Shown here piece after piece: positions 24,094-64,000 of a stretch of 64,000 nt of DNA. How positions within the stretch are numbered: the first letter of the stretch is position 1; each line of letters starts with the position of its first letter. The DNA is from Haplodiscus bocki (Eukaryota). The notes under the pieces were generated by a model, which was given only the letters and a program-made list of their open reading frames with translations, did not search any database and was not told where the DNA came from. Position numbers and translations under genes: made by a program. Where the stretch lies: positions 151,776,001 through 151,840,000 of the forward strand of contig OZ296648.1 in assembly GCA_965655095.1 (NCBI GenBank), written 5' to 3'.

Positions 24094-24902
24094 AGTTACT
24101 TCGTTGAGTTTCTAGCTCAAACAAGGTGAGCCAAACCGTTTCTATATTGGGATAGTCCTAAAATTAGATGTGATAACATCATATTTAATAAACATTCTAT
24201 CCACATTTTCTAACTCTGAAAAGATTCGAAGCATTAAAAGTACTGCATGTTAGCCAACAACTAAGGTTTCCTATATTTTCGAAAGATTCTGAAACATGGA
24301 TTCAATTTCAGTGTATACGCTGGAGAACTAAATAACAAGGTATTGAAAATGGCAAAAAATACCCGACTGTTGTTTCCTCACCCTCAAACTTGAATAAAAC
24401 TGCCCTTCTGAAGCACACACTGACATCAATTCTTTACACGTTGCATAACAAATAGTCAATAACCGTTTTTTTCTACGTCTCAAGTCAAGCACGTTGTTTT
24501 GGAAACAGTAAATACCTCTAAAATTGGAGAGTAATAAAATTTTAGGTGCTAAATTTTGAAAACACTAAAATGGCAAAGTGAGAATAGCATTTGTTGCAAT
24601 GACATCTGCTAGGTTTGTAGGACCTTGGAAAAGTTTTGAGATTCAGTCATTTTTCATAAATTAAAAAGCTTGAAGAAATTTGATTTGGAAAAATAGGCTA
24701 ACTAATACTATCATGGTTTCTACCAACCGGTCAAAAACAATGCATACAACCAATCGTATATTAAGCTTCGCATTAACTAAATTATTTTACAAAGCAAACA
24801 ATCATCTGTTGGCTAAAAGATTAAAAGGTAAAAACTTTCAAAAAAACAATCGTAAAACATTAAAGTGTTCAAGAACCACTCTCAGTGTAGAAATTTTTGG
24901 TG

Positions 24903-25614: not shown

Positions 25615-25879
25615 CTGAAATAAAAATAGGAACTTTGCGTTTGCCAATCAAAGCCAAAAAACATTTGACATCAATAGTTGGCCATAAACTACAGTAGTGA
25701 TTAGCTCAGCAGTTCACTTGATTATAATCACCACTATGTGACAAGAGAACAACAACCGCCGCAAGCATAGTTGACCATTTGCTGCACTTCAGATGATACA
25801 TCCCGCACAATGATTCAAGAATATAATGATAATTAGTCCACCTTGAAAGAGGAACTGTCTAAGAGATGGTCAAAATTGA

Positions 25880-28800
25880 ACTGTAACACCGAAAACGGAG
25901 GAGAACCCAAGGTCATGGTATTAACCATGTAAAAATGTTCCATTGGTTCAGATATCATCCAAAATCAAGAAAAAATGCGCATACAAAACTGAACTAAGCA
26001 AAATGAAGGAGCCCCCTACGTTAAACTCTTGAGACTCAATTCTTAGAAAAATCCGAAGTGTTAGTATACCACAGTCTAATCATTTTTCAAAAGTCCAGAC
26101 ATCTTTACACATCACGTTCACACCATCCGACAAAACTTCTTCAGACATAGCCAAAAAAAGAAACTCTTCAAAAAGCAATCGACAATCGAACGATTTAGGC
26201 AGTCCTGAGCCGCGTGAAAGAATCGTTAACAGTCTAAACACCAAAAATGACAAATACTCATTCTATGAACAATCAAAAGCCGACACCGAGCACGAAAAGA
26301 ACTCCAGGGTCACCTCAAAACGATCTAATCAAGTTTCATTGGTACAGATATTTAAGATCACGAAAAACTGCGTACAAAAACAAACCTTTTGATACGGCAG
26401 AAAAACAAGACCTGAACGTTAACCTCCAGAACAGAGCACTTTCTTCAGGGGAAACATTAGTGTCAGTATACAACAGTCTAATCACGTTTCATTGGTCCAG
26501 ACATCTTTGCACATCACGTTCACACAAACCGACGTATCTTCTTCAGACATAGCCAAAAAAAACTTGCCTAAAACGTCAAAAAACTATCAAAGTTCAAACA
26601 ATTGAGACAGACGGTTGGACGGGTTAGAGAATAGTTAACAGTCCAAACACAATAAATGACAAGCAGACGACTCAGTGTAAGAGCAAAAATTAAAATCAAA
26701 CTCTGGGGACAATTCCACGGCCACTGTAAAATGATCGAATCAAGTTTCATTGGTCCAGATATCTTTGCACATCACGTTCACACCATCTAACCGAACTTCT
26801 TCAGACATAGCTAAAAAAGGAAACTCTCTAAAAAGCAATCGACAATCAAACTATTTACGCAGTCCTGAGCCGCGTGAAAGAATCGTTAACAGTCTAAACA
26901 ACAACAATGACAAATACTCATTCTATGAACAAGCAAAAGCCGACACCGAGCACGAAAAGAACTACAGGGTCACCTCAAAACGATCTAATCAAGTTTCATT
27001 GGTACAGATATTTAAGATCACGAAAAACTGCGTACAGAAACAAACCTTTTGATACGGCAGAAAAACAAGACCTGAACGTTAACCTCCAGAACAGAGAGCA
27101 CTTTCTTCAGGGGAAACATTAGTGTCAGTATACAACAGTCTAATCACGTTTCATTGGTCCAGACATCTTTGCACATCGCGTTCACACAAACCGACGTATC
27201 TTCTTCAGACATAGCCAAAAAAACTTGCCTAAAACGTCAAAAAACTATCAAAGTTCAAACAATTGAGACAGACGGTTGGACGGGTTAGAGAATAGTTAAC
27301 AGTCCAAACACAATAAATGACAAGCAGACGACTCAGTGTAAGAGCAAAAATTAAAATCAAACTCTGGGGACAATTCCACGGCCACTGTAAAATGATCGAA
27401 TCAAGTTTCATTGGTCCAGATATCTTTGCACATCACGTTCACACCTTCCAAGACAACTTCTTCAGACATAGGTAAAAATGAAACTCTCTAAAGAGCAATC
27501 GACACTCAAACGACTTAGGCAGTCCTCAGCCGTGTGAACGAATCGTTAACAGTCCAAACACCATAAAGGGCAAAAAGAACACACAATTTAGGAGCAAAAA
27601 GGAAAACCATACTCCGCAGACAACTCGACACCCACGGTAGAATGATCTAATCATATTTCATTGTCTTAGATACCTTTCAAGATCACGAATCATTGCGTGC
27701 AAAAGACAACCTCTTAACACGGCAGAAAAAAAAGACCTAAACGTTAACTTCTGGGGTACTATTTTGAAACAAACCACAAGTGTCAGTATACATCTGTCCA
27801 ATCAGGTTTCATTGGTCCAGACATCTTTGCACATCACGTTCACACCATCCAACACATCTTCAGACATACGTGAAAAATCAAACTCTCTAAAAGCAGTCGA
27901 CACTCAAACGACTTAGGCAGTCCTCAGCCGTAAGAAAGAATCTTTAAAAGTCCAAACATCATAAATGACAAATACTCATTCTATGAAACAGCAAAAGGCG
28001 ACACCGCGCACGAAGGAGAATTCCAGGGTCACTTCAAAACGATCTAATCATGTTTCATTGGTCCAGATATCCAGGATCACTAAAAAATTCGTGCAAAAGC
28101 AAACCTTTTGTTACGGCAGAAAAAAGAGGCTGGAACGTTAACATACAGTGCAGAGTACTATATTCAGAAGAAACAAAAGTGTCAGTATACAACAGTCTAA
28201 TCACGTTTCATTGGTCCAGACATCTTTGCCCATCACGTCCATACCATCTAACACAACTTCCTCAGACATAGCTAAAAGAGGAAACTCTCTAAAAAGCAAT
28301 CGACACTCAAACGACTTAGACAACCCTCAGCCGAGTGAAAAAAGCGTTAATAGTCCAAACAACATAAAGGGCAAAACGACCACACAAATTAGGACCAAAA
28401 GGAAAACCATACTCCAGGGACAATTCGATGGCCATGGTAAAATGATGCATGCTTTAGATACCTTTCAAAATCACGAAAAAACGGATGCAAAAGAAAAAAA
28501 TCTTGACACTGCAGAAAAACAATACCTGAACGTAAAGTTCTAGAGTAGGATTCGGAAAGAATGCAAAAATGTCAGTACATATCTGTCCGACCAGGTTTCA
28601 TTGGTCCAGAAAACTTTGCACATCACGTTCACAGCATCTAACAGAACTTCTTCAGACATAGCTAAAAAAGGAAACTCTCTAAAAAGCAGTCGACACTCAT
28701 ACGATTTAGGCAGTCCTGAGCCGCGTGAAAGAATCGTTAACAGTCTAAACACCAACAATGACAAATACTCATTCTATGAACCAGCAAAAGCCGACATCGA

Positions 28801-31800
28801 GCACGAAAAGAACTACAGGGTCACCTCAAAACGATCTAATCAAGTTTCATTGGTACAGATATTTAGGATCACGAAAAACTGCATACAGAAACAAACCTTT
28901 TGATACGGCAGAAAAACAAGACCTGAACGTTAACCTCCAGAACAGAGCACTTTCTTCAGGGGAAACAAAAGTATCAGTATACAACAGTCTAATCAGGTTT
29001 CATTGGTCCAGACATCTTTGCACATCACGTTCACACCATACAACATAACTTCTTCTGACATGGCTAAAAATGAAACTCTTTTAAAAAGCAATCGACAATC
29101 AAACGATTTACGCAGTCCTGAGCCGCGTGAAAGAATCGTTAACAGTCTAAACAACAACAATGACAAATACTCATTCTATGAACAAGCAAAAGCCGACACC
29201 GAGCACGAAAAGAACTACAGGGTCACCTCAAAACGATCTAATCAAGTTTCATTGGTACAGATATTTAAGATAACGAAAAACTGCGTACAGAAACAAACCT
29301 TTTGATACGGCAGAAAAACAAGACCTGAACGTTAACCTCCAGAACAGAGCACTTTCTTCAGGGGAAACATTAGTGTCAGTATACAACAGTCTAATCACGT
29401 TTCATTGGTCCAGACATCCTTGTACATCACGTTCACACAAACCGACGTATCTTCTTCAGACATAGCCAAAAAACTTGCCTAAAACGTCAAAAAACTATCA
29501 AAGTTCAAACAATTGAGACAGACGGTTGGACGGGTTAGAGAATAGTTAACAGTCCAAACACAATAAATGACAAGCAGACGACTCAGTGTAAGAGCAAAAA
29601 TTAAAATCAAACTCTGGGGACAATTCCACGGCCACTGTAAAATGATCGAATCAAGTTTCATTGGTCGAGATATCTTTGCACATCACGTTCACACCATCTA
29701 ACCGAACTTCTTCAGACATAGCTAAAAAAGGAAACTCTCTAAAAAGCAGTCGACACTCAAACGACTTAGGCAGTCCTCAGCCGTGTGAACGAATCGTTAA
29801 CAGTCCAAACACCATAAAGGGCAAAAAGAACACACAATTTAGGAGCAAAAAGGAAAACCATACTCCGCAGACAGCTCGACACCCACGGTAGAATGATCTA
29901 ATCATGTTTCATTGTCTTAGATACCTTTCAAGATCACGAATCATTGCGTGCAAAAGACAACCTTTTAACACGGCAGAAAAAAAGACCTAAACGTTGACTT
30001 CTGGGGTACCATTTTGAAACAAACCACAAGTGTCAGTATACATCTATGCAATCAGGTTTCATTGGTCCAGACATCTTTGCACATCACGTTCACACCATCC
30101 AACACAACATCTTCAGACATACGTGAAAAATCAAACTCTCTAAAAGCAGTCGACACTCAAACGACTTAGGCAGTCCTCAGCCGTGTGAAAGAATCATTAA
30201 AAGTCCAAACATCATAAATGACAAATACTCATTCTATGAAACAGCAAAAGGCGACACCGCGCACGAAGGAGAATTCCAGGGTCACTTCAAAACGATCTAA
30301 TCATGTTTCATTGGTCCAGATATCCAGGATCACTAAAAAATTCGTGCAAAAGCAAACCTTTTGTTACGGCAGAAAAAAGAGGCTGGAACGTTAACATACA
30401 GTGCAGAGTACTATATTCAGAAGAAACAAAAGTGTCAGTATACAACAGTCTAATCACGTTTCATTGGTCCAGACAACTTTGCCCATCACGTCCATACCAT
30501 CTAACACAACTTCCTCAGACATAGCTAAAAGAGGAAACTCTCTAAAAAGCAATCGACACTCAAACGACTTAGACAACCCTCAGCCGAGTGAAAAAAGCGT
30601 TAATAGTCCAAACAACATAAAGGGCAAAACGACCACACAAATTAGGACCAAAAGGAAAACCATACTCCAGGGACAATTCGATGGCCATGGTAAAATGATG
30701 CATGCTTTAGATACCTTTCAAGATCACGAAAAAACGGGTGCAAAAGAAAAAAATCTTGACACTGCAGAAAAACAATACCTAAACGTAAACTTCTAGAGTA
30801 GGATTCGGAAAGAATGCAAAAATGTCAGTACATATCTGTCCGATCAGGTTTCATTGGTCCAGAAAACTTTGCACATCACGTTCACACCATCTAACAGAAC
30901 TTCTTCAGACATAGCTAAAAAAGGAAACTCTCTAAAAAGCAGTCGACACTCATACGATTTAGGCAGTCCTGAGCCGCGTGAAAGAATCGTTAACAGTCTA
31001 AACAACAACAATGACAAATACTCATTCTATGAACAAGCAAAAGCCGACACCGAGCACGAAAAGAACTACAGGGTCACCTCAAAACGATCTAATCAAGTTT
31101 CATTAGTACAGATATTTAAGATAACGAAAAACTGCGTACAGAAACAAACCTTTTGATACGGCAGAAAAACAAGACCTGAACGTTAACCTCCAGAACAGAG
31201 CACTGTCTTCAGGGGAAACATTAGTGTCAGTATACAACAGTCTAATCACGTTTCATTGGTCCAGACATCTTTGCACATCACGTTCACACAAACCGACGTA
31301 TCTTCTTCAGACATAGCCAAAAAAAACTTGCCTAAAACGTCAAAAAACTATCAAAGTTCAAACAATTGAGACAGACGGTTGGACGGGTTAGAGAATAGTT
31401 AACAGTCCAAACACAATAAATGACAAGCAGACGACTCAGTGTAAGAGCAAAAATTAAAATCAAACTCTGGGGACAATTCCACGGCCACTGTAAAATGATC
31501 GAATCAAGTTTCATTGGTCCAGATATCTTTGCACATCACGTTCACACCTTCCAACACAACTTCTTCAGACATAGGTAAAAATGAAACTCTCTAAAAAGCA
31601 ATCAACACTCAAACGACTTAGGCAGTCCTCAGCCGTGTGAACGAATCGTTAACAGTCCAAACACCATACAGGGCAAAAAAAACACACAATTTAGGAGCAA
31701 AAAGGAAAACCATACTCCGCGGACAACTCGACACCCACGGTAGAATGATCTAATCATGTTTCATTGTCTTAAGATACCTTTCAAGATCACGAATCATTGC

Positions 31801-34800
31801 GTGCAAAAGACAACCTTTTAACACGGCAGAAAAAAAAGACCTAAACGTTAACTTCTGGGGTACTAATTTGAAACAAACCACAAGTGTCAGTATACATCTG
31901 TACAATCAGGTTTCATTGGTCCAGACATCTTTGCACATCACGTTCACACCATCCAACACAACATCTTCAGACATACGTGAAAAATCAAACTCTCTAAAAG
32001 CAGTCGACACTCAAACGACTTAGACAAACCTCAGCCGAGTGAAAAAAGCGTTAATAGTCCAAACAACATAAAGGGCAAAACGACCACACAAATTAGGACC
32101 AAAAGGAAAACCATACTCCAGGGACAATTCGATGGCCATGGAAAAATGATGCATGCTTTAGATACCTTTCAAGATCACGAAAAAACGGGTGCAAAAGAAA
32201 AAAATCTTGACACTGCAGAAAAACAACACCTAAACGTAAACTAGAGTAGGATTCGGAAAGAATGCAAAAATGTCAGTACATATCGGTCCGATCAGGTTTC
32301 ATTGGTCCAGCAAACTTTGCACATCACGTTCACACCATCTAACAGAACTTCTTCAGACATAGCTAAAAAAGGAAACTCTCTAAAAAGCAGTCGACACTCA
32401 TACGATTTAGGCAGTCCTGAGCCGCGTGAAAGAATCGTTAACAGTCTAAACACCAACAATGACAAATACTCATTCTATGAACCAGCAAAAGCCGACACCG
32501 AGCACGAAAAGAACTACAGGGTCACCTCAAAACGATCTAATCAAGTTTCATTGGTACAGATATTTAGGATCACGAAAAACTGCATACAGAAACAAACCTT
32601 TTGATACGGCAGAAAAACAAGACCTGAACGTTAACCTCCAGAACAGAGCACTTTCTTCAGGGGAAACATAAGTGTCAGTATACAACAGTCTAATCACGTT
32701 TCATTGGTCCAGACATCTTCGCACATCACGTTCACACCATCTAACAGAACTTCTTCAGACATAGCTAAAAAAGGAAACTCTCTAAAAAGCAATCGACACT
32801 CAAACCATTTAGACAGTCCTCAGCCGTGTGAAAAAAGCGTTAATAGTCCAAACACCATAAAGGGCAATAAGACAACACAGCTTGGGAGCAGAAAAGAACA
32901 CCAAAATCCAGGGACAATTCGACATCTACGGTAGAATGATCTAATCAAGTTTCATTGCCTTAGATACCTTTCAAGATCACGAATCATTGCGTGCAAAAGC
33001 CAACCTTTTAACACGGCAGAAAAAAAAGACCTGAACGTTAACTTCTGGAGTACTATTTTGAAACAAAACACAAGTGTCAGTATACATCTGTCCGATCAGG
33101 TTTCATTGGTCCAGAAAACTTTGCAAATCACGTTCACACCATCTAACCGAACTTCTTCAGACAGCTAAAAAGGAAACTCTCTAAAAAGCAGTCGACACTC
33201 ATACGATTTAGACAGTCCTCAGCCATGTGAAAGAATCTTTAAAAGTCCAAACATCATAAATGACAAACACTCATTCTATAAAACAGCAAAATGCGAGACC
33301 GCGCACGAAGGAGAATTCCAGGGTCACCTCAAAACGATCTAATCAAGTTTCATTGGTCCAGACATCTTTGCACATCACGTTCACACCATACAACATAACT
33401 TCTTCTGACATGGCTAAAAATGAAACTCTCTAAAAAGCAATCGACACTCAAACGACTGAGGCAGTCCTCAGCCGTGTGAACGAATCGTCAACAGTCCAAA
33501 CACCATAAAGGGCAGTAAGAACACACAATTTAGGAACAAAAAGGAAAACCATACTCCGCAGACAGCTCGACACCCACGGTAGAATGATCTAATCATGTTT
33601 CATTGTCTTAGATACCTTTCAAGATCACGAATCATTGCGTGCAAAAGACAATCTTTTAACACGGCAGAAAAAAAGACCTAAACGTTAACTTCTGAAGCAC
33701 TATTTCGAAACAAACCACAAGTGTTAGTATACATCTGTCCAATCAGGTTTCATTGGTCCAGACATCTTTGCACATCACTTTCACACCATCTAACAGAACT
33801 TCTTCAGACATAGCTAAAAAAGGAAACTCTCTAAAAAGCAATCGACACTCAAACGACTCAGACAGTCCTCAGCCGTGTGAAAAAAGCGTTAATAGTCCAA
33901 ACAACATAAAGGGCAAAACGACCACAGAAATTAGGACCAAAAAGGAATACCAAACTCCAGGGACAATTCGATGGCCATGGTAAAATGATGCATGCTTTAG
34001 ATACCTTTCAAGATCACGAAAAAACGGGTGCAAAAGCAAAAATTTTGACACTGCAGAAAAACAATACCTAAACGTAAACTTCGAGTAGGATTCGGAAAGA
34101 AACCAAAAATGTCAGTACATATCTAGCCGATCAGGTTTCATTGGTCCAGAAAACTTTGCACATCACGTTCACACCATCTGACCGAACTTCTTCAGACAGC
34201 TGAAAAGGAAACTCTCTAAAAAGCAGTCGACACTCATACGATTTAGACAGTCCTCAGCCATGTGAAAGAATCTTTAAAAGTCCAAACACATACAATGACA
34301 AATACTCATTCTATGAACCAGCAAAAGCCGACACCGAGCACGAAAAGAACTACAGGGTCACCTCAAAACGATCTAATCAAGTTTCATTGGTACAGATATT
34401 TAGGATCACGAAAAAATGCATACAAAAACAAACCTTTTGATACGGCAGAAAAACAAGACCTGAACGTTAACCTCCAGAACAGAGCACTTTCTTCAGGGGA
34501 AACATAAGTGTCAGTATACAACAGTCTAATCACGTTTCATTGGTCCAGACATCTTCGCACATCACGTTCACACCATCTAACAGAACTTCTTCAGACATAG
34601 CTAAAAAAGGAAACTCTCTAAAAAGCAGTCGACACTCGTACGATTTAGGCAGTCCTCAGCCGCGTGAAAGAATCGTTAACAGTCTAAACACCAACAATGA
34701 CAAATACTCATTCTATGAACCAGCAAAAGCCGACACCGAGCACGAAAAGAACTACAGGGTCACCTCAAAACGATCTAATCAAGTTTCATTGGTACAGATA

Positions 34801-37800
34801 TTTAGGATCACGAAAAACTGCATACAGAAACAAACCTTTTGATACGGCAGAAAAACAAGACCTGAACGTTGACCTCCAGAACAGAGCACTTTCTACAGGG
34901 GAAACAAAAGTGTCAGTATAGAACAGTCTAATCACGTTTCATTGGTCCAGACATCTTTGCACATCACTTTCACACCATCTAACAGAACTTCTTCAGACAT
35001 AGCTAAAAAAGGAAACTCTCTAAAAAGCAGTCGACACTCATACGATTTAGGCAGTCCTCAGCCAAGTGAAAGAATCTTTAAAAGTCCAAACATCATAAAT
35101 GACAAACACTCATTCTAGAAAACAGCACAAGAAGACACCGCGCACGAAGGAGAATTCCAGGGTCATTTCAAAACGATCTAATCAGGTTTCATTGGTCCAG
35201 ACATCTTTGCACATCACGTTCACACCATCCAACACAACATCTTCAGACATACGTGAAAAATCAAACTCTCTAAAAGCAGTCGACACTCAAACGACTTAGG
35301 CAGTCCTCAGCCGTGTGAAAGAATCATTAAAAGTCCAAACATCATAAATGACAAACACTCATTCTAGAAAACAGCACAAGAAGACACCGCGCACGAAGGA
35401 GAATTCCAGGGTCATTTCAAAACGATCTAATCAGGTTTAATTGGTACAGATATTTAAGATCACGAAAAACTGCGTGCAGAAACAAACCTTTTAATACGGC
35501 AGAAAAACAAGACCTGAACGTTAACCTCTACAACAGAGCACTTTCTTCAGGGAAAACATAAGTGTCAGTATACAACAGTCTAATCACGTTTCATTGGTCC
35601 AGACATCTTTGCACATCACGTTCACATCATCCAACACAACATCTTCAGACATAGCCAAAAAAAACTTGCCTAAAACGTCAAAAAACTATAAAAGTTCAAA
35701 CAATTGAGACAGACGGTTGGACGGGTTAGAGAATAGTTAACAGTCCAAACACAATAAATGACAAGCAGACGACTCAGTGTAAGAGCAAAAACTAAAATCA
35801 AACTCTGCGGACAATTCCAGGGCCATGTAAAATGATCGAATCAAGTTTCAATGGTCCAGATATCTTTGCACATCACGTTCACACCTTCCAACACAACTTC
35901 TTCAGACATAGGTAAAAATGAAACTCTCTAAAAAGCAATCGACACTCAAACGACTGAGGCAGTCCTCAGCCGTGTGAACGAATCGTCAACAGTCCAAACA
36001 CCATAAAGGGCAGTAAGAACACACAATTTAGGAACAAAAAAGAAAACCATACTCCGGGGACAACTCGACGCCCACGGTACAATGATCTAATCATGTTTCA
36101 TTCTCTTAGATACCTTTCAAGATCACGAATCATTGCGTGCAAAAGCCAACCTTTTAACACGGCAGAAAAAAAAGACCTGAACGTTAACTTCTGGAGTACT
36201 ATTTTGAAACAAAACACAAGTGTCAGTATACATCTGTCCAATCAGGTTTCATTGGTCCAGACATTTTTGGACATCACGTTCACACCATCCAACACAACAT
36301 CTTCAGACATAGATGAAAAATCAAACTCTCTAAAAGCAGTCGACACTCAAACGACTCAGGCAGTCCTCAGCCGTGTGAAAGAATCTTTAAATGTCCAAAC
36401 ATCATAAATGACAATTAATCATTCTATAAAACAGCAAAAGAAGACACCGCGCACGAAGGAGAATTCCAGGGTCATCTCAAAACGATCTAATAACGTTTCA
36501 TTGGTCCAGACATCTTTGCACATCACGTTCAGACAATCCGACATATCTTCTTCAGACATAGCCAAAAAAACTTGCCTAGAACGTCAAAAAACTATCAAAG
36601 TTCACAATTGAGACAGACGGTTGGACGGATTAGAGAATAGTTAACAGTCCAAACACAATAAATGACAAGCAGACGACTCAGTGTAAGAGCAAAAACTAAA
36701 ATCAAACTCTGCGGACAATTCCACGGCCACTGTAAAATGATCGAATCAAGTTTCAATGGTCCAGATATCTTTGCACATCACGTTCACACCTTCCAACACA
36801 ACTTCTTCAGACATAGGTAAAAATGAAACTCTCTAAAAAGCAATCGACACTCAAACGACTGAGGCAGTCCTCAGCCGTGTGAACGAATCGTTAACAGTCC
36901 AAACACCATAAAGGGCAATAAGAACACACAATCTAGGAACAAAAAAGAAAACCCTACTCAGGGGACAACTCGACGCCCACGGTACAATGATCTAATCATG
37001 TTTCATTCTCTTAGATACCTTTCAAGATCACGAATCATTGCGTGCAAAAGCCAAGCTTTTAACACGGCAGAAAAAAAAGACCTGAACGTTAACTTCTGGA
37101 GTACTATTTTGAAACAAAACACAAGTATCAGTATACATCTGTCCAATCAGGTTTCATTGGTCCAGACATTTTTGGACATCACGTTCACACCATCCAACAC
37201 AACATCTTCAGACATAGGTGAAAAATCAAACTCTCTAAAAGCAGTCGACACACAAACGAATCAGGCAGTCTTCAGCCGTGTGAAAGAATCTTTAAAAGTC
37301 CAAACATCATAAATGACAATTAATCATTCTATAAAACAGCAAAAGAAGACACCGCGCACGAAGGAGAATTCCAGGGTCATCTCAAAACGATCTAATCACG
37401 TTTCATTGGTCCAGACATCCTTGTACATCACGTTCACACAATCCGACATATCTTCTTCAGACATAGCCAAAAAAACTTGCCTAAAACGTCAAAAAACTAT
37501 CAAAGTTCAAACAATTGAGACAGGGTTGGACGGGTTAGAGAATGGTTAACAGTCCAAACACAATAAATGACAAACAGACGACTCAGTGTAAGAGCAAAAA
37601 GCAATATCAAACTCTGGGGACAAATCCACGGCCACTGTAAAAAGATCGAATCAAGTTTCAATGGTCCAGATATCTTTGCACATCACGTTCACACCTTCCA
37701 ACACAACTTCTTCAGACATAGGTAAAAAGGAAACTCTCTAAAAAGCAGTCGACACTCAAACGACTTGGGTAGTCCTCAGCCGTGTGAACGAATCGTTAAC

Positions 37801-49800: not shown

Positions 49801-52800
49801 CTCTAAAAGCAGTGGACACTCAAACGACTTAAGCAGTCCTCAGCCGTTTGAAAGAATCTTTAAAAGCCAAACATCATAAATGAAAAATACTCATTCTATA
49901 AAACAGCAAAAGGCGACACCGCGCACGAAGGAGAATTCCAGGGTCACTTCAAAACGATCTAATCATGTTTCATTGGTCCAGATATCTCAGATCACTAAAA
50001 AATTCGTGCAAAAGCAAACCTTTTATTACAGCAGAAAACAAAAGAGGCTTGAACGTTAACATCCAGAGCAGAGTACTATATTCAGAAGAAACAAAAGTGT
50101 CAGTATACAACAGTCTAATCACGTTTCATTGGTCCAGACATCTTTGCACATCACGTTCACACCATCTAACAGAACTTCTTCAGACATACCTAAAAAAGGA
50201 AACACTCTAAAAAGCAATCGACACTCAAACGCTTTGGACAGTCTTCAGCCTTGCGGAAAAACCGTTAACAGTCCAAACACCATAAAGGGCAATAAGACCA
50301 CACGATTTAGGAGCAAAAAGGAATATCATACTCCAGGGACAAGTCGACGGCCACAATCAAGTTTCATTGCTTTAGATAACTTTCAAGATCACGAATCATT
50401 CCGTGCAAAAGCCGACCTTTTAACACGGCAGAAAAAAAACAAGACTTGAACATTAACTTCTGGAGTATTATTTTGAAACAAACCACAAGTGTCAGTATAC
50501 GTCTGTCCAATCAGGTTTCATTGGTCCAGACATCTTTGCACATCACGTTCACACCATCCAAAACATCTTCTTTACACACAGGTAAAAAACTTGCTTAAAA
50601 CGTCAGAAACCTATCGATGTTCAAACGATTGTGACAGACGGTTAGACGTGTCAGAGTATAGTTGACAGTCCAAACACAAAAAAAGGCTATAAGACAACAA
50701 ACTTAGGAGCAAAAAGGAGAGCATACTCCAGGAACAATTCGACGCCCCGGAGGAATGATCTGATCAAGTTTCATTGCTTTAGATACCTTCAAGATCACAA
50801 AATGTTGCGTGCAAAAGCAAACCTTTTAACACGGCAAAAAAACAAGACCTGAACATTAACTTCTGGAGTAGTATTTTGAAACAAACCACAAGTGTCAGTT
50901 TACCTCTGTCCAATCAGGTTTCATTGGTCCAGACATCTTTGCACATCACGTTCACACCATCCAAAACATCTTCTTTACACAGAGGTAAAAAAACTTGCTT
51001 AAAACGTCAGAAACCTATCGATGTTCAAACGATTGTGACACACGGTTAGACGTGTCAGAGTATAGTTGACAGTCCAAACACAAAAAAAGGCTATAAGACA
51101 ACAAACTTAGGAGCAAAAAGAATAGCATACTCCAGGAACAATTCGACGGCCACGGAGGAATGATCTGATCAAGTTTCATTGCTTTAGATACCTTCAAGAT
51201 CACAAAAAGTTGCGTGCAAAAGCAAACCTTTTAACACGGCAGAAAAACAAGACCTGAACGTTACCTTCTGAAGCACTATTTCGAAACAAACCACAAGTGT
51301 TAGTGTACATCTGTCCAATCAGGTTTCATTGGTCCAGACATTTTTGCACATCACGTTCCCACCATCCAACACAACATCTTCAGACATACGTGAAAAATGA
51401 AACTCTCTAAAAGCAGTGGACACTCAAACGACTTAAGCAGTCCTCAGCCGTTTGAAAGAATCTTTAAAAGCCAAACATCATAAATGACAAATACTCATTC
51501 TATAAAACAGCAAAAGGCGACACCGCGCACGAAGGAGAATTCCAGGGTCACTTCAAAACGATCTAATCATGTTTCATTGGTCCAGATATCTCAGATCACT
51601 AAAAAATTCGTGCAAAAGCAAACCTTTTATTACGGCAGAAAACAAAAGAGGCTTGAACGTTAACATCCAGAGCAGAGTACTATATTCAGAAGAAACAAAA
51701 GTGTCAGTATACAAAAGTCTAATCACGTTTCATTGGTCCAGACATCTTTGCACATCACGTTCACACCATCTAACAGAACTTCTTCAGACATACCTAAAAA
51801 AGGAAACACTCTAAAAAGCAATCGACACTCAAACGATTTGGACAGTCTTCAGCCTTGCGGAAAAACCGTTAACAGTCCAAACACCATAAAGGGCAATAAG
51901 ACCACACGATTTAGGAGCAAAAAGGAATATCATACTCCAGGGACAATTCGACGGCCGCAATCAAGTTTCATTGCTTTAGATACCTTTCAAGATCACGAAT
52001 CATTGCGTGCAGAAGCCAACGTTTTAACACGGCAGAAAAACAAGAGCTAAACGTTAACTTCTGGCGTACTATTTTGAAACAAACCACAAGTGTCAGTATA
52101 CATCTGTCCAATCAAGTTTCATTGGTCCAGACATTTTTGCACATCACGTTCCCACCATCCAACACAACATCTGCAGACATACGTGAAAAATGAAACTCTC
52201 TAAAAGCAGTGGACACTCAAACGACTTAAGTAGTCCTCAGCCGTTTGAAAGAATCTTTAAAAGCCAAACATCATAAATGACAAATACTCATTCTATAAAA
52301 CAGCAAAAGGCGACACCGCGCACGAAGGAGAATTCCAGGGTCACTTCAAAACGATCTAATCATGTTTCATTGGTCCAGATATCTCAGATCACTAAAAAAT
52401 TCGTGCAAAAACAAACCTTTTATTATGGCAGAAAAAAGAGGCTTGAACGTTAACATCCAGAGCAGAGTACTATATTCAGAAGCAACAAAAGTGTCAGTTT
52501 ACAACAGTCTAATGAAGTTTCCTTGGTCCAGACATCTTTGCACATCACGTTCACACCATCTAACAGAACTTCTTCAGACATACCTAAAAAAGGAAACACT
52601 CTAAAAAGCAATCGACACTCAAACGATTTGGACAGTCCTCAGCCGTGTGAAAGAATCATTAAAAGTCCAAACATCATAAATGACAAATACTCATTCTATG
52701 AAACAGCAAAAGGCGACACCGGGCACGGAAAACTCCAGGGTCACGTCAAAACGATCTAATCAAGTTTCATTGGTCCAGATATCCGAAATCACGAAGCCTT

Positions 52801-55800
52801 GAGTGCAAAAGCAAACCTTTTGCCACGGCAGAAAAACGAGACTTGAACGTTAACTTCCAGAGCAGAGTACTATTTTCAGTGGGAACAAAAGAGTCTGTCA
52901 GTATACAACAGTCTAATCACGTTTCATTGGTCCAGACATCTTTGCACATCAGCTTCACACCAACGAACATTACATCTGACATAGCTCAAAAATGAAACTC
53001 TTTAAAAAGGAATCGACACTCAAACGATTTAGGCAGTCCTCATCTGTGTGAAAGAATCGCTAAAAACCAACACATCACAAATGACAAATACTTATTCTAT
53101 GAAAGAGTAAAAGGCGACACCGAGCACGAAACAGAAATCCAGCGTCACGTCAAAACATCTAATCAAGTTTCATTGGTCCAGATAACCAAAATCACGAAGC
53201 ATTGCGTGCAAAAGCAAAACTTTTGCCACGGCAGAAAAACGAGACTTGAACGTTAACGTCCAGAGCAGAGTACTATTTTCAGTGGGAACAAAAGTGTCTG
53301 TCAGTATACAACAGTCTAATCACGTTTCATTGGCCCAGACATCTTTGCACATCACGTTCACACGATCCAACACAACATGTTCAGACAGACGTGAAAAATG
53401 AAACTCTCTAAAAGCAGTGGACACTCAAACGACTTAGGCAGTCCTCAGCCGTTTGAAAGAATCGCTGAAAACCCACACATCATAAATGACAAATACTTAT
53501 TCTATGAAAGAGCAAAAGGCGACACTGCGCACGAAGGAGAATTCCAGGGTCACGTCAAAACGATCTAATCAAGTTTCAATTGTCCAGGTACTTAGAATCA
53601 CGAAATATTGCGTGCAAGAACAAACATTTTGACACGGCAGAAAAACAAGACCTGAAGGTTGATATCCAGAGTACCCATTTCAGCGGAAACAAAAGTGTCA
53701 TTATAGAACAGTCCGTTCTGGTTTTTTGAGTCCAGACATCTTTACAAATCACATTCACACCATCCAAAACATCTTCTTTACACACAGGTAAAATACTTGC
53801 TCAAAACGTCAGAAACCTATCGATGTTCAAAAAATTAAGACAGACGGTTAGACGTGTTAGAGTATAGTTGACAGTCAAAACACAAAAAAGGGCTATAAGA
53901 CAACACAATTTAGGAGCAAAAAAAGAGCATACTCCAGGAACAATTCAAGGTCCACGGAGGAATGATCTGATCAAGTTTCAATGACTTAGATACCTTAAAG
54001 ATCACAAAATGTTGCGTGCAAAAGCAAACCTTTTAGGACGGTAAAAAAAAAGACCTGAACGTTATCTTCTGGAGCACTATTTCGAAACAAACCACAAGTG
54101 TCAGCATACATCTGGCCAATCAGGTTTCATTGGTCCAGACATTTTTGCACATCAAGTTCCCACCATCCAACACAACATCTTCAGACATACGTGAAAAATA
54201 AAACTCTCTAGAAGCAGTCGACACTCAAACGACTTAGGCAGTCCTCAGCCGTTTGAAAGAATCGCTGCAAACCCTCACATCAAAAAAAACAAATACTTAT
54301 TCTATGAGAGAGTAAAAGGCGACACCGAGCACGAACGAGAAATCCAGCGTAACGTCAAAACATCTAATCAAGTTTCATAGGTCCAGATATCCAAAATCAC
54401 GAAGCATTGCGTGCAAAAGCAAACCTTTTGCCACGGCAGAAAAACGAGACTTGAACGTTAACTTCCAGAGCAGAGTACTATTTTCAGTGGGAACAAAAGA
54501 GTCTGTCAGTATACAACAGTCTAATCACGTTTCATTGGTCCAGACATCTTTGCACAACAGCTTCACACCAACGAACATATCTTCTGACATAGCTCAAAAA
54601 TGAAACTCTTTAAAAAGCAACCGACACTCAAACGATTTAGGCAGTCCTCATCTGTGTGAAAGAATCGTTTAAAGTCCAAACATCAGAAAAGACAAATACT
54701 CAATCTATGAAAGAGCAAAATGCGAAACCGGGCACGGAAGAAAACTCCAGGGTCACGTCAAAACGATCTAATCAAGTTTCAATTGTCCAGATATTCAGGA
54801 TCACGAAAAATTGCGTGCAAGAACAAACATTTTGACACGGCAGAAAAATAAAACTTGAACGTTGACTTCTAGAGTACCAATTTCAGCGGAAAAAAAAGTG
54901 TCATTATAGAACAGTCCATTCTGGTTTTTTGAGTCCAGACATCTTTACAAATCACATTCACACCATCCAAAACATCTTCTTTACACACAGGTAAAATACT
55001 TGCTCAAAAGGTCAGAAACCTATCGATGTTCAAACGACTGAGACAGACGGTTCCACGTGTCAGAGTCTAGTTGACAGTCAAAACACAAAAAAGGGCTATA
55101 AGACAACACAATTTAGGAGCAAAAAGAATAGCACACTCCAGGAACAATTCGACGGCCACGGAGGAATGATCTGATCAAGTTTCAATGCTTTAGATACCTT
55201 CAAGATCACAAAATGTTGCGTGCAAAAGCAAACCTTTTAAGACGGCAAAAAAAGAAGACCTGAACGTTATCTTCTGAAGCACTATTTCGAAACAAACCAC
55301 AAGTGTCAGTATACATCTGGCCAATCAGGTTTCATTTGTCTACACATCATTGCACGTCACGTTCACACCATCCAACACAACATCTTCAGACATACGTGAA
55401 AAATGAAGATCTCTAGAAGCAGTCGACACTCAAACGACTTAGGCAGTCCTCAGCCGTGTGAAAGAATCGCGAAAAACCCACACAACAGAAATGACAAACA
55501 CTCAATCTTTGAAAGAGCAAAATGCGAAACCGGGCACGGAAAACTCCAGGGTCACGTCAAAACGATCTAATCAAGTTTCATTGGTCCAGATATCCGAAAT
55601 CACGAAGCCTTGAGTGCAAAAGCAAACCTTTTGCCACGGCAGAAAAACGAGACTTGAACGTTAACTTCCAGAGCAGAGTACTATTTTCAGTGGGAACAAA
55701 AGAGTCTGTCAGTATACAACAGTCTAATCACGTTTCATTGGTCCAGACATCTTTGCACAACAGCTTCACACCAACGAACATATCTTCTGACATAGCTCAA

Positions 55801-58800
55801 AAATGAAACTCTTTAAAAAGCAACCGACACTCAAACGATTTAGGCAGTCCTCATCTGTGTGAAAGAATCGTTTAAAGTCCAAACATCAGAAAAGACAAAT
55901 ACTCAATCTATGAAAGAGCAAAATGCGAAACCGGGCACGGAAGAAAACTCCAGGGTCACGTCAAAACGATCTAATCAAGTTTCAATTGTCCAGATATTCA
56001 GGATCACGAACAATTGCGTGCAAGAACAAACATTTTGACACGGCAGAAAAATAAAACTTGAACGTTGACTTCTAGAGTACCAATTTCAGCGGAAAAAAAA
56101 GTGTCATTATAGAACAGTCCATTCTGGTTTTTTGAGTCCAGACATCTTTACAAATCACATTCACACCATCCAAAACATCTTCTTTACACACAGGTAAAAT
56201 ACTTGCTCAAAAGGTCAGAAACCTATCGATGTTCAAACGACTGAGACAGACGGTTCCACGTGTCAGAGTCTAGTTGACAGTCAAAACACAAAAAAGGGCT
56301 ATAAGACAACACAATTTAGGAGCAAAAAGAATAGCACACTCCAGGAACAATTCGACGGCCACGGAGGAATGATCTGATCAAGTTTCAATGCTTTAGATAC
56401 CTTCAAGATCACAAAATGTTGCGTGCAAAAGCAAACCTTTTAAGACGGCATACAAACAAGACCTGAACGTTATCTTCTGAAGCACTATTTCGAAACAAAC
56501 CACAAGTGTCAGTATACATCTGGCCAATCAGGTTTCATTTGTCTACACATCATTGCACGTCACGTTCACACCATCCAACACAACATCTTCAGACATACGT
56601 GAAAAATGAAGATCTCTAGAAGCAGTCGAAACTCAAACGACTTAGGCAGTCCTCAGCCGTGTGAAAGAATCGCTAAAAACCTACACATCATAAATAACAA
56701 ATACTCATTCTATAAAACAGCAAAAGGCGACAGCGAGCACGAAAGAGAAATCCAGGGTCACGTCAAAACATCTAATCAAGTTTCATTGGTCCAGATATCC
56801 GAAATCACGAAGCCTTGCGTGCAAAAGCAAACCTTTTGCCACGGCAGAAAAACGAGACTTGAACGTTAACTTCCAGAGCAGAGTACTATTTTCAGTGGGA
56901 ACAAAAGTGTCTGTCAGTATACAACAAGCTAATCACGTTTCATTGGTCCAGACATCTTTGCACATCAGCTTCACACCAACGAACATAGCTTCTGACATAG
57001 CTCAAAAATGAAACTCTTTAAAAAGCAATCGAAGCTCAAACGATTTAGGCAGTCCTCATCTGTGTGGAAGAATCGCTAAAAACCCACACATCAAAAATGA
57101 CACATACTTATTCTGTGAAAGAGTAAAATGTGACACCGAGCACGAAAGAGAATTGCAGGGTCACGTCAAAACATCTAATCAAGTTTCATTGGTCGAGACA
57201 TCTTTGCACATCACGTTCACACCATCCAACACAACATCTTCAGACATACGTGAAAAATGAAACACTAAAAAGCAGTCGACACTCAAACGACTTAGGCAGT
57301 CCTCAGCCGTGTGAAAGAATCGCGAAAAACCCACACAACAGAAATGACAAACACTCAATCTTTGAAAGAGCAAAATGCGAAACCGAGCACGGAAGAAAAT
57401 TCCAGGGTCACGTCAAAACGATCTAATCAAAATTCAATTGTCCAGATATTCAGAATCACGAAATATTGCGTGCAAGAACAAACATTTTGACACGGCAGAA
57501 AAACAAGACTTGAACGTTGAGTTCCAGAGTAAAAAATTCAGCGGAAACAAAAGTGTCATTATAGAACAGTCCATTCTGGTTTTTTGAGTCCAGACATCTT
57601 TACAAATCACATTCACACCATCCAAAACATCTTCTTTACACACAGGTAAAATACTTGCTCAAAACGTCAGAAACCTATCGATGTTCAAATGACTGAGACA
57701 GACGGTTCGACGTGTCAAGAGTATAGTTGACAGTCAAAACACAAAAAAAGGGCTAAAAGACAAAACAATTTAGGAGCAAAAAAATAGCATACACCAGGAA
57801 CAATTCGACGGCCACGGAGGAATGATCTAATCAAGTTTCATTGCTTTAGATACCTTTCAAGATCACGAATCATTCCGGACAAAAGCAAACCTTTTAACAC
57901 GGCATACAAACAAGACTTGAACGATAAATTCTGAAGCATTTCGAAACAAACCACAAGTGTTAGTATACATCTGTCCAATCAGGTTTCATTTGTCCAGACA
58001 TCATTGCACATCACGTTCACACCATCCAACACAACATCTTCAGACATACGTGAAAAATGAAACACTAAAAAGCAGTCGACACTCAAACGACTTAGGCAGT
58101 CCTCAGCCGTGTGAAAGAATCGCTAAAAACCCACACATCATAAATGACAAATACTCATTCTATGGAAGAGCAAAATGCGAAACCGAGCACGGAAGAAAAT
58201 TCCAGGGTCACGTGAAAACGATCTAATCAAGTTTCAATTGTCCAGATATTCAGAATCACGAAATATTGCGTGCAAGAACAAACATTTTGACACGGCAGAA
58301 AAACAAGACTTGAACGTTGAGTTCCAGAGTAAAAATTTCAGCGGAAACAAAAGTGTCATTATAGAACAGTCCATTCTGGCTTTTTGAGTCCAGACATCTT
58401 TACAAATCACATTCACACCATCCAAAACATCTTCTTTACACACAGGTAAAATACTTGCTCAAAACGTCAGAAACCTATCGATGTTCAAATGACTGAGACA
58501 GACGGTTCGACGTGTCAAGAGTATAGTTGACAGTCAAAACACAAAAAAAGGGCTAAAAGACAAAACAACTTAGGAGCAAAAAAATAGCATACTCCAGGAA
58601 CAATTCGACGGCCACGGAGGAATGATCTAATCAAGTTTCATTGCTTTAGATACCTTTCAAGACCACGAATCATTCCGGACTAAAGCACACTTTTTAACAG
58701 GGCATACAAACAAGACTTGAACGATAAATTCTGGAGTATTATTTTGAAACAAACCACAAGTGTCAGTAAACATGTCCAATCAGGTTTCATTTATCCAGAC

Positions 58801-61800
58801 ATCTTTGCACATAATTTTCACAACATCCAACAGAACTTCTTCAGACATAGCTAAAAAATGAAACTCTCCAAAATGCAATCTACTCTCAAACGATCTAGGC
58901 AGTCGGCAGCCTGTGAAAGAATCGTTAAAAGTCCAAACATCAGAAATGACAAATACTCAATCTATGAAAGAGCAAAATGCGAAACCGAGCACGGAAGAAA
59001 ACTCCAGGGTCACGTCAAAACGATCTAATCAAGTTTCGATTGTCCAGATATTCAGAATCACGAAATATTGCGTGCAAGAACAAACATTTTGACACGGCAG
59101 AAAAACAAGACTTGAACGTTGAGTTCCAGAGTAAAAATTTCAGCGGAAACAAAAGTGTCATTATAGAACAGTCCATTCTGGCTTTTTGAGTCCAGACATC
59201 TTTACAAATCACATTCACACCATCCAAAACATCTTCTTTACACACAGGTAAAATACTTGCTCAAAACGTCAGAAACCTATCGATGTTCAAATGACTGAGA
59301 CAGACGGTTCGACGTGTCAAGAGTATGTTGACAGTCAAAACACAAAAAAGGGCTAAAAGACAAAACAATTTAGGAGCAAAAAAATAGCATACTCCAGGAA
59401 CAATTCGACGGCCACGGAGGAATGATCTAATCAAGTTTCATTGCTTTAGATACCTTTCAAGACCACGAATCATTCCGGACTAAAGCACACTTTTTAACAG
59501 GGCATACAAACAAGACTTGAACGATAAATTCTGGAGTATTATTTTGAAACAAACCACAAGTGTCAGTAAACATGTCCAATCAGGTTTCATTTATCCAGAC
59601 ATCTTTGCACATAATTTTCACAACATCCAACAGAACTTCTTCAGACATAGCTAAAAAATGAAACTCTCCAAAATGCAATCTACTCTCAAACGATCTAGGC
59701 AGTCGGCAGCCTGTGAAAGAATCGTTAAAAGTCCAAACATCAGAAATGACAAATACTCAATCTATGAAAGAGCAAAATGCGAAACCGAGCACGGAAGAAA
59801 ACTCCAGGGTCACGTCAAAACGATCTAATCAAGTTTCGATTGTCCAGATATTCAGGATCACGAAAAATTGCGTGCAAGAACAAACATTTTCACACGGCAG
59901 AAAAACAAGACTTGAGCGTTGACTTCCAGAGTACCAATTTCAGTGGAAACAAAAGTGTCATTATAGAACAGTCCATTCTGGTTTTTTGAGTCCAGACATC
60001 TTTACAAATCACATTCACACCATCCAAAACATCTTCTTTACACACAGGTAATTTAGTTGCTCAAAACTTCAGAAACCTATCGATGTTCAGATGACTGAGA
60101 CAGACGGTTCGACGTGTCAGAGTATAGTTGACAGTCAAAACACAAAAAGGGCTAAAAGACAAAACAATTTGGGAGCAAAAAAAAATAGCATACTCCAGGA
60201 ACAATTCGACGGCCACGGAGGAATGATCTAATCAAGTTTCATTGCTTTAGATACCTTTCAAGATCACGAATCATTCCGGACTAAAGCACACTTTTTAACA
60301 GGGCATACAAAAAAGACTTGAACGAGAAATTCTGGAGTATTATTTTGAAACAAACCACAAGTGTCAGTAAACAAGTCCAATCAGGTTTCATTTATCCAGA
60401 CATCTTTGCACATAATTTTCACAACATCCAACAGAACTTCTTCAGACATAGCTAAAAAATGAAACTCTCTAAAATGCAATCTTCTCTCAAACGATCTAGG
60501 TAGTCGGCAGCCTATGAAAGAATCGTTAAAAGTCCAAACATCAGAAATGACAAATACTCAATCTATGAAAGAGCAAAATGAGAAACCGAGCACGGAAGAA
60601 AACTCCAGGGTCACGTCAAAACGATCTAATCAAGTTTCACTTGTCCAGATATTCAGAATCACGAAATATTGCGTGCAAGAACAAACATTTTGACACGGCA
60701 GAAAAACAAGACTTGAACGTTGAGTTCCAGAGTAAAAATTTCAGCGGAAACAAAAGTGTCATTATAGAACAGTCCATTCTGGCTTTTTGAGTCCAGACAT
60801 CTTTACAAATCACATTCACACCATCCAAAACATCTTCTTTACACACAGGTAAAATACTTGCTCAAAACGTCAGAAACCTATCGATGTTCAGATGACTGAG
60901 ACAGACGGTTCGACGTGTCAGAGTATAGTTGACAGTCAAAACACAAAAAGGGCTAAAAGACAAAACAATTTGGGAGCAAAAAAAAATAGCATACTCCAGG
61001 AACAATTCGACGGCCACGGAGGAATGATCTAATCAAGTTTCATTGCTTTAGATACCTTTCAAGATCACGAATCATTCCGGACAAAAGCAAACCTTTTAAC
61101 ACGGCATACAAACAAGACTTGAACGATAAATTCTGAAGCACTATTTCGAAACAAACAACAAGTGCTAGTATACATCTGTCCAATGAGGTTTCACTTGTCC
61201 AGACATCATGGCACATCACGTTCACACCATCCAACACAACATCTTCAGACATACGCAAAAACTGAAACTCTCTAAAAGCAGTCGACACTCAAACAACTTA
61301 GGCGGTCCTCAGCCGTGTGAAAGAATCGTTAAAAGTCCAAGCATCATAAATTTACAAATAATCATTCTATGAAACAACAAAAGGCGACACCGAGAGCACG
61401 ATGGAGAATTCCAGGGTCACTTCGAAACAATCTAATCAAGTTCCGTTGGTCCAGATATCAAAGATCAGTAAAAATTGCGTGCAAAAGCAAACCTTTTGAA
61501 ACGGCAGAAAAACGAGACTTGAACGTTAACTTTCAGGGCAGAATATTATTTTCCGAGGGAACAAAAATGTCAGTATACATCAGTCTAATCACGTTTCATT
61601 GGTCCAGACATCTTAACGCATCACTAAAAACAACTTCTCGGAAGGTTAACTCAAAAGTAAAACTCTTGTTCAAGAAGCTATGGGTGTTGAAACGATTGAG
61701 ACATAACGTCAGACTTGTGATGGAATCGTTAACAGTCCAAACACCAAAAATGACAATTAGTCGACTATATGTAAGAGCAGAATGCAACACCAATGTCAGA

Positions 61801-62860
61801 AAAATCCAAGGACACAGTGAAAAGAATCTAACCAAGTTTAGTTGGTCCAGACATCTAAGATCACAAAAAATTGTGTGCATAAGCAAACCTTTTAACACGG
61901 CAGAAAACGAAGACTTGACCGTAAAGTTCTAGAGTACGATTTGTAAGGAAACCATAAGTGTCAGTATACATCTGTCCAATCAGGTTTCCATGGTCCAGGC
62001 ATTTTTGCACATCACGTTCACACCATCCAACACAACATCTTCAGACATACGTGAAAAATGAAACTCTCTAAAAGCAGTCGACACTCAAACGACTTAGGCA
62101 GTCCTCAGCCGTGTGAAAGAATCGTTAAAAGTCCAAACATCATAAATGACAAATACTCATTCTAAAAAACAGCAAAAGGCGACACCGGGTACGAAAGAGA
62201 ATTCCAGGGTCACGTCAAAAGGATCTAATCACGTCTCATTTGTCAAGACATCTCAAGACATCACCCAAAACAACCCCTTGGAACGTAACTTAAAAGTAAA
62301 ACTCTTCTTTAAGAAGCTATCGGCGTTCAGACGATTGAGACATAAGGTCAGACGTGTGATAGAATCGTAGAGAGTCCAAACACCAAAATTGACAATTAGT
62401 CGACTGTATGTAAGAGCAAAAGGCAACACCGATGTCAGAAGAGAATTACAAGGACACAATAAAAAGATCTAACCAAGTTTCGTTGGTCCAGATATCTTTC
62501 GAGATCACGAAATATGGCAAGCCAAAACAACCTAAGACGGCAAGAAAAACGGGACTTGAACATTAACTCTCAGAATTTCAATTTAAAAGAAACAGAAGTG
62601 CCAGCATACAACGGTATAATCAAAATTCATTGATCCAGACACATTTAAACGTCACTTTCACAGCACATAACACAACCGCTTCAGATATAGCCAAAAATAC
62701 TTCTCAAAGCAAAGTATTTAAAAAAAGATCGATGCTCAAACGAAAGACAGAAATTCAGATTTTGATAAAAATCGTTATTAGTCCAAACACAATATTTGAC
62801 CACTAGTCGACGCTGTGTGGGATCAAACACCACCATCAGACACGACGGAGAATTCTAAAG
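25880..62860. repeat. Complex satellite DNA array, ~37 kb, basic unit ~402 bp (A ~250 bp + B ~152 bp), roughly 90-100 units, multiple local higher-order repeats
   Basis: Box AATCAnGTTTCATTGGTCCAGA recurs at alternating ~250/~152-bp spacing (e.g. ~28838, 28991, 29240, 29393). Identical ORF-track peptides recur at offsets 661, 800-811, 905, 1604-1610 and 2250. Single orientation, diverged edges. Confidence 0.97.
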
Positions 62861-63239
62861 TCAGCAAACAAGCTTGAAGAAGTATCCTAACCCACTACCT
62901 ATCGGCGCCCTTACCCCTTCGTATTATATAGAGCGCTATGTGTGCAGACTTGCAGTGCGCGCTGTACGTGGCAGTGTCGGCTATCTAAAGTCTGTGAGAA
63001 TACGATCAATTCTATGTGTGATGGGTAATTTCAGTAAAAGTAATGAAACTACTTGAAGAAATTTTCGACAGAAAAAAAAATTCGGTATATTTCAAGTACT
63101 TACATGGGTGTTGCCTCATCATACAAGTACATACAGGCATCAGCATTTCTCGTGTACTTTGTGCTTTTCATAAAGAAACAGCGATTATTTACCACCAACA
63201 TACATAAAACAGTGGCAAGACAAAAAACCTTGACTTAAA

Positions 63240-63365
63240 ATAACCCGGCCAAAAATGCCCCAAATCCCAAAATATCCAAAGGCAAAATGCCCACAGACCC
63301 AAAAAAGGAACAATCATACTAATCGAAGAATTAACGCTAAACTTTAACAGACGCTACCAATTACC
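63240..63365. repeat. Truncated arm of the 19012-19968 element family
   Basis: cccaaatcccaaaatatccaaaggc...actaat...aattaac...cgctaccaattac resembles reverse complement of 19830-19960. Confidence 0.5.
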
Positions 63366-63404
63366 CAAGTTTAACGTTTTAAAATATTGATGTCAGATTG
63401 AAAT

Positions 63405-63675
63405 AAACAGATGCGGAGCTGTGTTTTGCAACACTTGCGCAAACGGAATACAAGTAAGAAACGCTATTTCACTCGATTCATGAATGAAATGAATATACTG
63501 ATTCTCAAGCAGCAATAGTGCAGTCAGTGGAGCATGCAACAGCGGCACGAAAGATTCGGTTCGATCATCGGCCAAGATTTTCTTAGTCGGAGTCTCGGAA
63601 GTTTAGGGCTTGTGAACAGATCGTGAAAGTGACCAAAGATTGCGTGCGATACAACACTGGAATAGCGCAAGTGTA
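63405..63675 (-). mobile_element. Helentron/DINE-like non-autonomous element (family copy 3) with degenerate tRNA-like segment
   Basis: aaacagatgcggagctgtg hairpin, ACACTTGCGC (63431-63440) / GCGCAAGTGT (63665-63674). Confidence 0.65.
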
Positions 63676-64000
63676 GCAGAGAGGCGAAGCCAAAATCCTC
63701 CAGTTTTGCGAACAAAGAGAACAGCACGACCCATCAATACCGGGAAGCTTGTCTAAAAGAATGCGAATCCGAAGTTATCAGAACGGATTTATACCAAATA
63801 AAGGAACTAAAAAATTGCCAAACTGTGTCCAAAAATCAACTCTGGGATTTTTCCCACAAAATGCATAGTTCTTTTCTTAGGAAACTGCGGAGATCGAAAA
63901 TTCTAGAAATGTGCGACATCTACAAATGATGTTTTCAACTGGTCTCCGAAAACAACACCGAACAACAGCCCCTAGGTCGCAATGAAGCACGCTTTTCGCT

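Follow-up and report, generated by a model that had tools for sequence, protein, structure and literature searches.

Satellite-containing gigantic introns have been described in the Y-linked fertility genes of Drosophila, e.g., kl-3, kl-5 and ORY (PMC6508621, PMC11207136). Tandem repeats of another kind, the hammerhead-ribozyme repeats of animals or retrozymes, are built of units of a few hundred base pairs (bp) and occur in invertebrate genomes (PMC7761336). The locus presented here is an MSL3-like gene located in a stretch of 64,000 nucleotides from Haplodiscus bocki (assembly GCA_965655095.1, contig OZ296648.1, positions 151,776,001 to 151,840,000 of the forward strand), hereafter called the window. 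The available evidence makes it quite probable that the locus consists of one intact three-exon gene, read from the minus strand, whose intron 2, 46,088 bp long, owes its inflated size mainly to a 36.9-kb satellite with a monomer of 402 bp. Taken alone, such an intron would hardly surprise, since introns of comparable size are routine in large animal genomes. The added value lies in a series of three species in which one and the same intron measures 0.3, 5 and 46 kb, and in a short box shared by the repeats of two of them. The locus would thus offer a base-level example, outside the insects, of a conserved chromatin-reader gene that retains an open frame and an unaccelerated protein evolution despite a 37-kb intronic satellite.

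Organization of the MSL3-Like Gene

An earlier reading of the window, made from the letters alone (the sequence-only reading), had proposed that the last exon of an MSL3-like gene begins in the middle of the MRG domain at a splice acceptor and is intact up to its stop, that neither a chromo-barrel nor an N-terminal MRG exon occurs in the non-satellite flanks of the array, and that the upstream exons lie beyond position 64,000, with the satellite enclosed in a single intron of at least 38 kb. The observations among these proposals are confirmed, and the inference on the upstream exons and the single intron is supported. The last exon opens at 25614 after an acceptor AG (25616-25615) which follows a pyrimidine-rich tract; its first base finishes a codon begun upstream, and the 236 codons that follow remain open to the stop at 24905-24903. 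It matches positions 82-189 of the 190 positions of the Pfam MRG family (PF05712; E 2.6e-22, 79.6 bits). The residue at which it starts (S-LCKE) is identical in three other corals, as judged, for the fourth coral (contig L006), from the homology of the called frame only. With 14 full-length MSL3-type proteins as tblastn queries against the whole window, the last exon alone was recovered, with no chromo-barrel and no N-terminal MRG exon.

The missing exons were found by homology on a contig of the same species, ena:ERZ26859043:ctg86637 (203,837 bp), which is collinear with the window and was used as three overlapping pieces, L002, L003 and L004, the last of which continues upstream of L003 and is read in the direction of the gene. 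Exon 1, encoding the chromo-barrel, sits 374 bp upstream of exon 2, and exon 2 ends about 7.7 kb past the end of the window, near 71,703 in window numbering. Both parts of the MRG domain exceed the PF05712 cut-off of 22.8 bits. Exon 2 closes with two bases of a codon to which the last exon adds the third, giving a serine at the junction ...PLTSI-S-LCKEILDG, in such a way that the giant intron interrupts MRG between positions 72 and 82 of the Pfam family. The three exons, which lie on the same strand in compatible phase, join into a frame of 509 amino acids devoid of stops, and the four splice sites all follow the canonical GT-AG rule with matching phases.

Judged from its predicted domains, the locus is an MSL3-like gene, which combines an MSL3-type chromo-barrel with a complete MRG domain. 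The solved structures closest to exon 1 are those of human MSL3 (3OB9, 3OA6) and fly MSL3 (3M9Q), and the best full-length protein matches are only about 25-37% identical. The orthology to the bilaterian MSL3 is putative, and is suggested by the domain matches only.

To produce the messenger RNA (mRNA), RNA polymerase II (Pol II) would have to read the whole array as a U/G-rich intronic RNA, and the spliceosome would join the donor of exon 2 to the acceptor at 25615-25616, located 46 kb away. Provided that the gene is expressed, the 46-kb intron would add roughly 12-23 minutes of transcription, Pol II progressing by 2-4 kb per minute. The features of the locus are collected in Table 1.

Table 1. 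Features of the MSL3-like locus and of its downstream neighbour, in gene order. Plain numbers are positions in the window; those preceded by L004 refer to the upstream piece of contig ctg86637.
Feature	Position	Strand	Description
Exon 1, chromo-barrel	L004:5683-5988, then GT	same as last exon	PF22732, E 1.2e-13, 51.3 bits (cut-off 28)
Exon 2, MRG	L004:6363-6874, AG before, GT after	same as last exon	PF05712 positions 13-72, 35 bits
Non-satellite distal intron, first part	62744..64000	minus	no satellite match, no MSL3 homology; continues ~7.7 kb to the exon 2 donor (L003, L004)
Satellite array	25885..62743 (36.9 kb)	minus	~90 copies of a 402-bp monomer, uninterrupted, single orientation; Tandem Repeats Finder (TRF) and BLAST tiling
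Two-monomer higher-order-repeat domain	57177..61624	minus	~811-bp unit, 93.9% identical
Plain-monomer domain	43522..50992	minus	neighbours 89-90% identical; closest to consensus (88-91%); most of the 17 AATAAA
~906-bp repeat domain	35579..38225	minus	94.9% identical
Higher-order-repeat domain	26738..31328	minus	2,251-bp unit of four monomers and one ~650-bp variant; copies 96.8% identical
Non-repetitive intron beside last exon	25615..25884 (270 bp)	minus	pyrimidine tract and acceptor AG 25616-25615; no satellite match
Last (third) coding exon, MSL3-like	24903..25614	minus	C-terminal two thirds of MRG and low-complexity linker; stop 24905-24903
Ubiquitin hydrolase gene, downstream neighbour	10154-24093	minus	begins ~800 bp past the MSL3-like stop; neighbour also in two other corals
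Hydrolase zf-UBP exon	23674-24093	minus	
Hydrolase UCH exons	21920-22297 and 20739-21065	minus	
Hydrolase DUSP match	10154-10645	minus	weak, under the Pfam cut-off

Anatomy of the Satellite Array

The satellite of about 37 kb announced by the sequence-only reading corresponds to an array that starts at 25885 and whose distal edge falls at 62711-62743, close to the edges then proposed (25880 and 62860). According to TRF, its period is 402-403 bp. All 126 pieces matched by a reference monomer in a BLAST comparison share the same orientation, and no copy occurs in 1..25800. The consensus was derived from 70 monomers, with a mean pairwise identity of 74.5%, and tiling of the array gives about 90 matches from 25886 to 62743. 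The strand corresponding to the gene sense consists of 38.6% T, 22.9% G, 22.1% A and 16.5% C, and is thus T/G-rich, as stated by the sequence-only reading.

Self-comparison of the array, complemented by monomer spacing for the domain nearest to the last exon, delineates the four domains listed in Table 1. The monomers at the edges are the most diverged, with 74-76% identity to the consensus versus 82-91% inside the array. Taken together, a divergence of about 25% among monomers, local repeats of 94-97% identity and diverged edges are the usual signature of an old array that has evolved locally through unequal exchange.

Signals of RNA processing are distributed in the array without evidence of selection for or against them on the sense strand. 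The hexamer AATAAA occurs 17 times on this strand versus 7.5 times expected from composition, i.e., without any depletion, and the 35 strong acceptor-like sites are expected for a T-rich strand. The absence of GTRAGT from both strands of the array is not meaningful, the expectation being only about 0.3 per monomer. A comparison with Rfam gave no match in the window at the gathering score, nor in four monomers at E up to 1, which sets the units apart from ribozyme, tRNA and snoRNA repeats. Outside the MSL3-like gene, the window contains a separate tandem array at 3369-4440, with a 60-bp unit, higher-order periods from 180 to 344 bp and 86-95% matches, which is unrelated to the 402-bp satellite.

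Intron 2 in Related Corals

Among the checks suggested by the sequence-only reading were a homology search of the flanking contig, which yielded exons 1 and 2 as described above, and a comparison of the intron in related species, which turned out in its favour. In the present species (window and L002 to L004), the 46,088 bp of intron 2 are shared out between the 402-bp satellite (about 36.8 kb, 80%), a unique stretch of 270 bp and 8,991 bp of other DNA, including transposon debris. In the nearest relative, a coral (contig L001) whose last exon is 75% identical at the amino-acid level, intron 2 measures 4,954 bp and contains a 3.4-kb array of a 186-bp unit. In a more distant coral (contig L005), whose last exon is 46% identical, it is reduced to 320 bp and contains no tandem repeat. 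The splice position and the phase of intron 2 are identical in all three species. The gene order, i.e., a DNAJC16-like gene followed by the MSL3-like gene and a USP-type hydrolase gene, is the same here, where the upstream neighbour is a DnaJ/thioredoxin (DNAJC16-like) gene on L004, and in L001; L005 keeps the succession of the MSL3-like gene and the hydrolase, and its contig stops before exon 1, leaving the upstream neighbour out of view. The kept splice position and phase, together with the same neighbours, identify an orthologous locus rather than a stray copy. No alignment of the intron flanks is possible between species, as expected at such a divergence.

The most economical reading of this series, although not demonstrated, is that a tandem repeat was probably already present in intron 2 of the common ancestor shared with L001, after the split from the lineage of L005. 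The ancestral repeat would then have grown about eleven-fold in the present species, most likely in place and by unequal exchange starting from a short tandem repeat, and transposon debris would have filled the rest of the intron. With respect to its function, the array is best seen as intronic ballast that is tolerated and presumably neutral, and which the gene does not need. The roles raised by the sequence-only reading, namely a transcriptional delay, an island of heterochromatin or a source of satellite RNA, are speculative.

Other observations were made on the same intron and its surroundings. In a fourth coral (contig L006), whose last exon is 41% identical, no MSL3 exon 2 occurs in the 10 kb that precede the last exon of the orthologous gene, which means that intron 2 either exceeds 10 kb or has an exon 2 that went undetected. 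A DNA polymerase B frame of the Polinton/Maverick type (PF03175) is located upstream of this last exon, at L006:3772-5130, which raises the possibility that another kind of element enlarged intron 2 of this coral in an independent event. In the part of intron 2 situated past the end of the window, two direct copies of 1,170 bp (L004:7728-8897 and L004:12199-13368) are 98.1% identical, and the 3.3 kb between them hold a fragment of a piggyBac-type transposase (PF13843, E 4e-23, L004:10465-11025). The two copies may be the long direct repeats of an element, or have arisen by local duplication. Finally, the public gene calls on the coral contigs L001 to L006 read TGA as tryptophan, and the listed "proteins" are accordingly frames that cross real stops and introns instead of gene models; only two calls, both without internal TGA, were used here.

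A CCAAT-Type Box Common to Both Repeats

A CCAAT-type box occurs twice in each 402-bp monomer, at positions 102 and 254 of the consensus. Its 12-mer core CTGGACCAATGA, which contains a perfect CCAAT core, has 84 exact occurrences in the array, always on the gene-sense strand. The box at position 102 belongs to the part of the monomer that is best conserved, two other stretches being equally conserved within the array. The 186-bp unit of the related coral (array at L001:5461-9003) possesses a single box, which is oriented with respect to the gene as in the 402-bp monomer. The best local alignment of the box between the two arrays reaches a score of 43, versus 19 +/- 2.4 (maximum 29) in 300 shuffles. 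In all the locus DNA analysed (L001 to L006), the box is confined to the two arrays. A scan of a metagenome collection with 17 bases of the box gave, among the matches listed, single matches in unrelated contigs, consistent with chance, and no tandem locus; these contigs, one of them labelled as a human-gut metagenome, were left out of the comparison. By its consensus only, the box resembles an NF-Y-type CCAAT element and is a candidate protein-binding site. If it has been conserved in place, the number of copies would have been free to drift, from 18 units up to about 180 boxes.

Alternative Explanations and Integrity of the Gene

The idea that the size or the position of the array results from an assembly artefact, i.e., from a mis-join or from a collapsed or inflated repeat, arises from the fact that a 37-kb array exceeds typical HiFi reads; moreover, the two assemblies compared here possibly come from the same reads, and are thus not fully independent. 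The name of the second contig presumably points to a metagenome assembler. This separately assembled contig corresponds to the window at both edges of the array over 33 kb, L002 being 99.99% identical to 14903..35684 and positions 1..12632 of L003 being 99.95% identical to 51367..64000, and the middle of the array between these two stretches, deduced from the coordinates, amounts to exactly 15,683 bp in both. Owing to these matched edges and to the equal length of the middle, the two assemblies agree on the length of the array. In addition, the unitigs of four DNA runs (two samples from one study) lead without any difference from the exon across the acceptor to the first monomer of the array, which supports the proximal junction and is silent on expression. 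The differences between monomers (75-90% identity) are large enough for a unique placement and the flanking genes are the neighbours expected from the gene order, so that an artefact is hardly credible.

A dead or split gene, in which the growth of the array would have ended the joining of exons 1 and 2 to exon 3 and whose frames would still be open only for want of time, is unlikely as well. The argument in its favour comes from the public runs, as the search for the last exon found it in four runs, all of which are DNA runs, and in no RNA run. The chromo-barrel, which possesses a leucine at a position where human MSL3 has a tryptophan, could also be invoked. The aromatic cage of human MSL3 consists of residues Y31, F56, W59 and W63. 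In the alignment to 3OA6, these columns are occupied here by F, F, L and Y, three of the four being aromatic, and the same residues occur in the relative (L001). Since the leucine at the W59 column is common to a relative with a 5-kb intron, it predates the expansion and represents a feature of the lineage instead of a sign of decay. Furthermore, the frames are open in both species, with 509 amino acids here and 524 in the relative, at 76% amino-acid identity, and the splice sites are canonical. The nonsynonymous divergence (dN) between them is 0.146, whereas 62% of the four-fold sites differ, which corresponds to a Jukes-Cantor distance of about 1.3 and amounts in effect to saturation. The ratio of nonsynonymous to synonymous divergence (dN/dS) by the Nei-Gojobori method is computable for exon 1 only, the other synonymous sites being saturated, and equals 0.075. 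In a relative-rate test with the third coral (L005) as the outgroup, 22 unique amino-acid changes were counted here versus 15 in L001 (p 0.25), i.e., no surplus, and neither acceleration on the branch bearing the giant intron nor any sign of relaxed constraint is seen. Even the youngest large duplications of the array have diverged by 3-6%, and typical monomers by about 25%; over such a time a neutral frame of 1.5 kb would be expected to have gained stops or frameshifts. The indirect evidence consequently favours a working gene. A promoter located downstream of the array, producing a short protein with the C-terminal MRG part besides or instead of the full-length mRNA, appears very unlikely. 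A small frame at 63170..63105, ending in AT|GTAAGT with an in-phase donor at about 63105, provides a candidate start; however, it resembles no MSL3, a frame of 22 codons beside a GT is easily produced by chance, a short isoform starting there would still require splicing across the whole array, and the conserved exons 1 and 2 are present upstream. The frame was consequently rejected as a short first exon for want of homology and in view of the exons found upstream.

The role of the repeat itself is subject to another interpretation, according to which it would be an old element kept by selection, with its boxes forming a protein-binding array for an NF-Y-type or satellite-binding factor that acts on the locus or its chromatin. 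Two species with saturated neutral sites have arrays in the same intron and in the same orientation, which speaks for such an element, but the idea is doubtful. The survival of the box could also be explained if both arrays derive from a dispersed family of box-bearing satellites. Several points weigh against an intact gene enlarged by growth of its repeat in place, in addition to the absence of RNA runs and the possible common origin of the two assemblies mentioned above. The donor that follows exon 2, GTTTGT, is no strong consensus site. The low dN/dS, being an average over a very long period, cannot date the constraint relative to the growth of the array. As for growth in place, only the box of about 35 bp is shared by the 402-bp and 186-bp repeats, the remainder of which does not align.

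Comparison with Known Satellite Systems

Like the satellites of the Drosophila Y genes, the array lies wholly within an intron of a conserved protein-coding gene and accounts for most of the intron length; it would similarly have to be transcribed to make the mRNA, and the size of the intron greatly exceeds that in relatives. The differences are equally clear. The Drosophila Y introns extend over hundreds of kb to megabases and are 20 to 100 times larger than the 46-kb intron found here, their satellites are made of simple 5-10-bp repeats whereas the present monomer of 402 bp is complex, and nothing at this locus points to sex linkage, to a testis programme or to dedicated RNA-binding factors. 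The megabase scale and the simple-sequence satellite by which Y-loop-type introns are recognized are therefore both lacking here. The retrozymes resemble the array in their tandem units of a few hundred bp, and differ from it by their ribozyme, since the present repeats have no Rfam match.

The CENP-B box of alpha satellite is an example of a protein-binding box that is conserved while the rest of the monomer evolves fast. The box of about 35 bp described here is similarly the only part common to the two repeats; unlike alpha satellite, however, the arrays are intronic, with no evidence of a centromeric role, and the box is a candidate by its consensus only. The locus can be placed with the satellite-inflated giant introns on account of two observations: exons of a single gene lie on both sides of the array, on the same strand and with compatible splice sites, and the orthologous intron is much shorter in the relatives, with 320 bp and 4,954 bp versus 46,088 bp in the present species.

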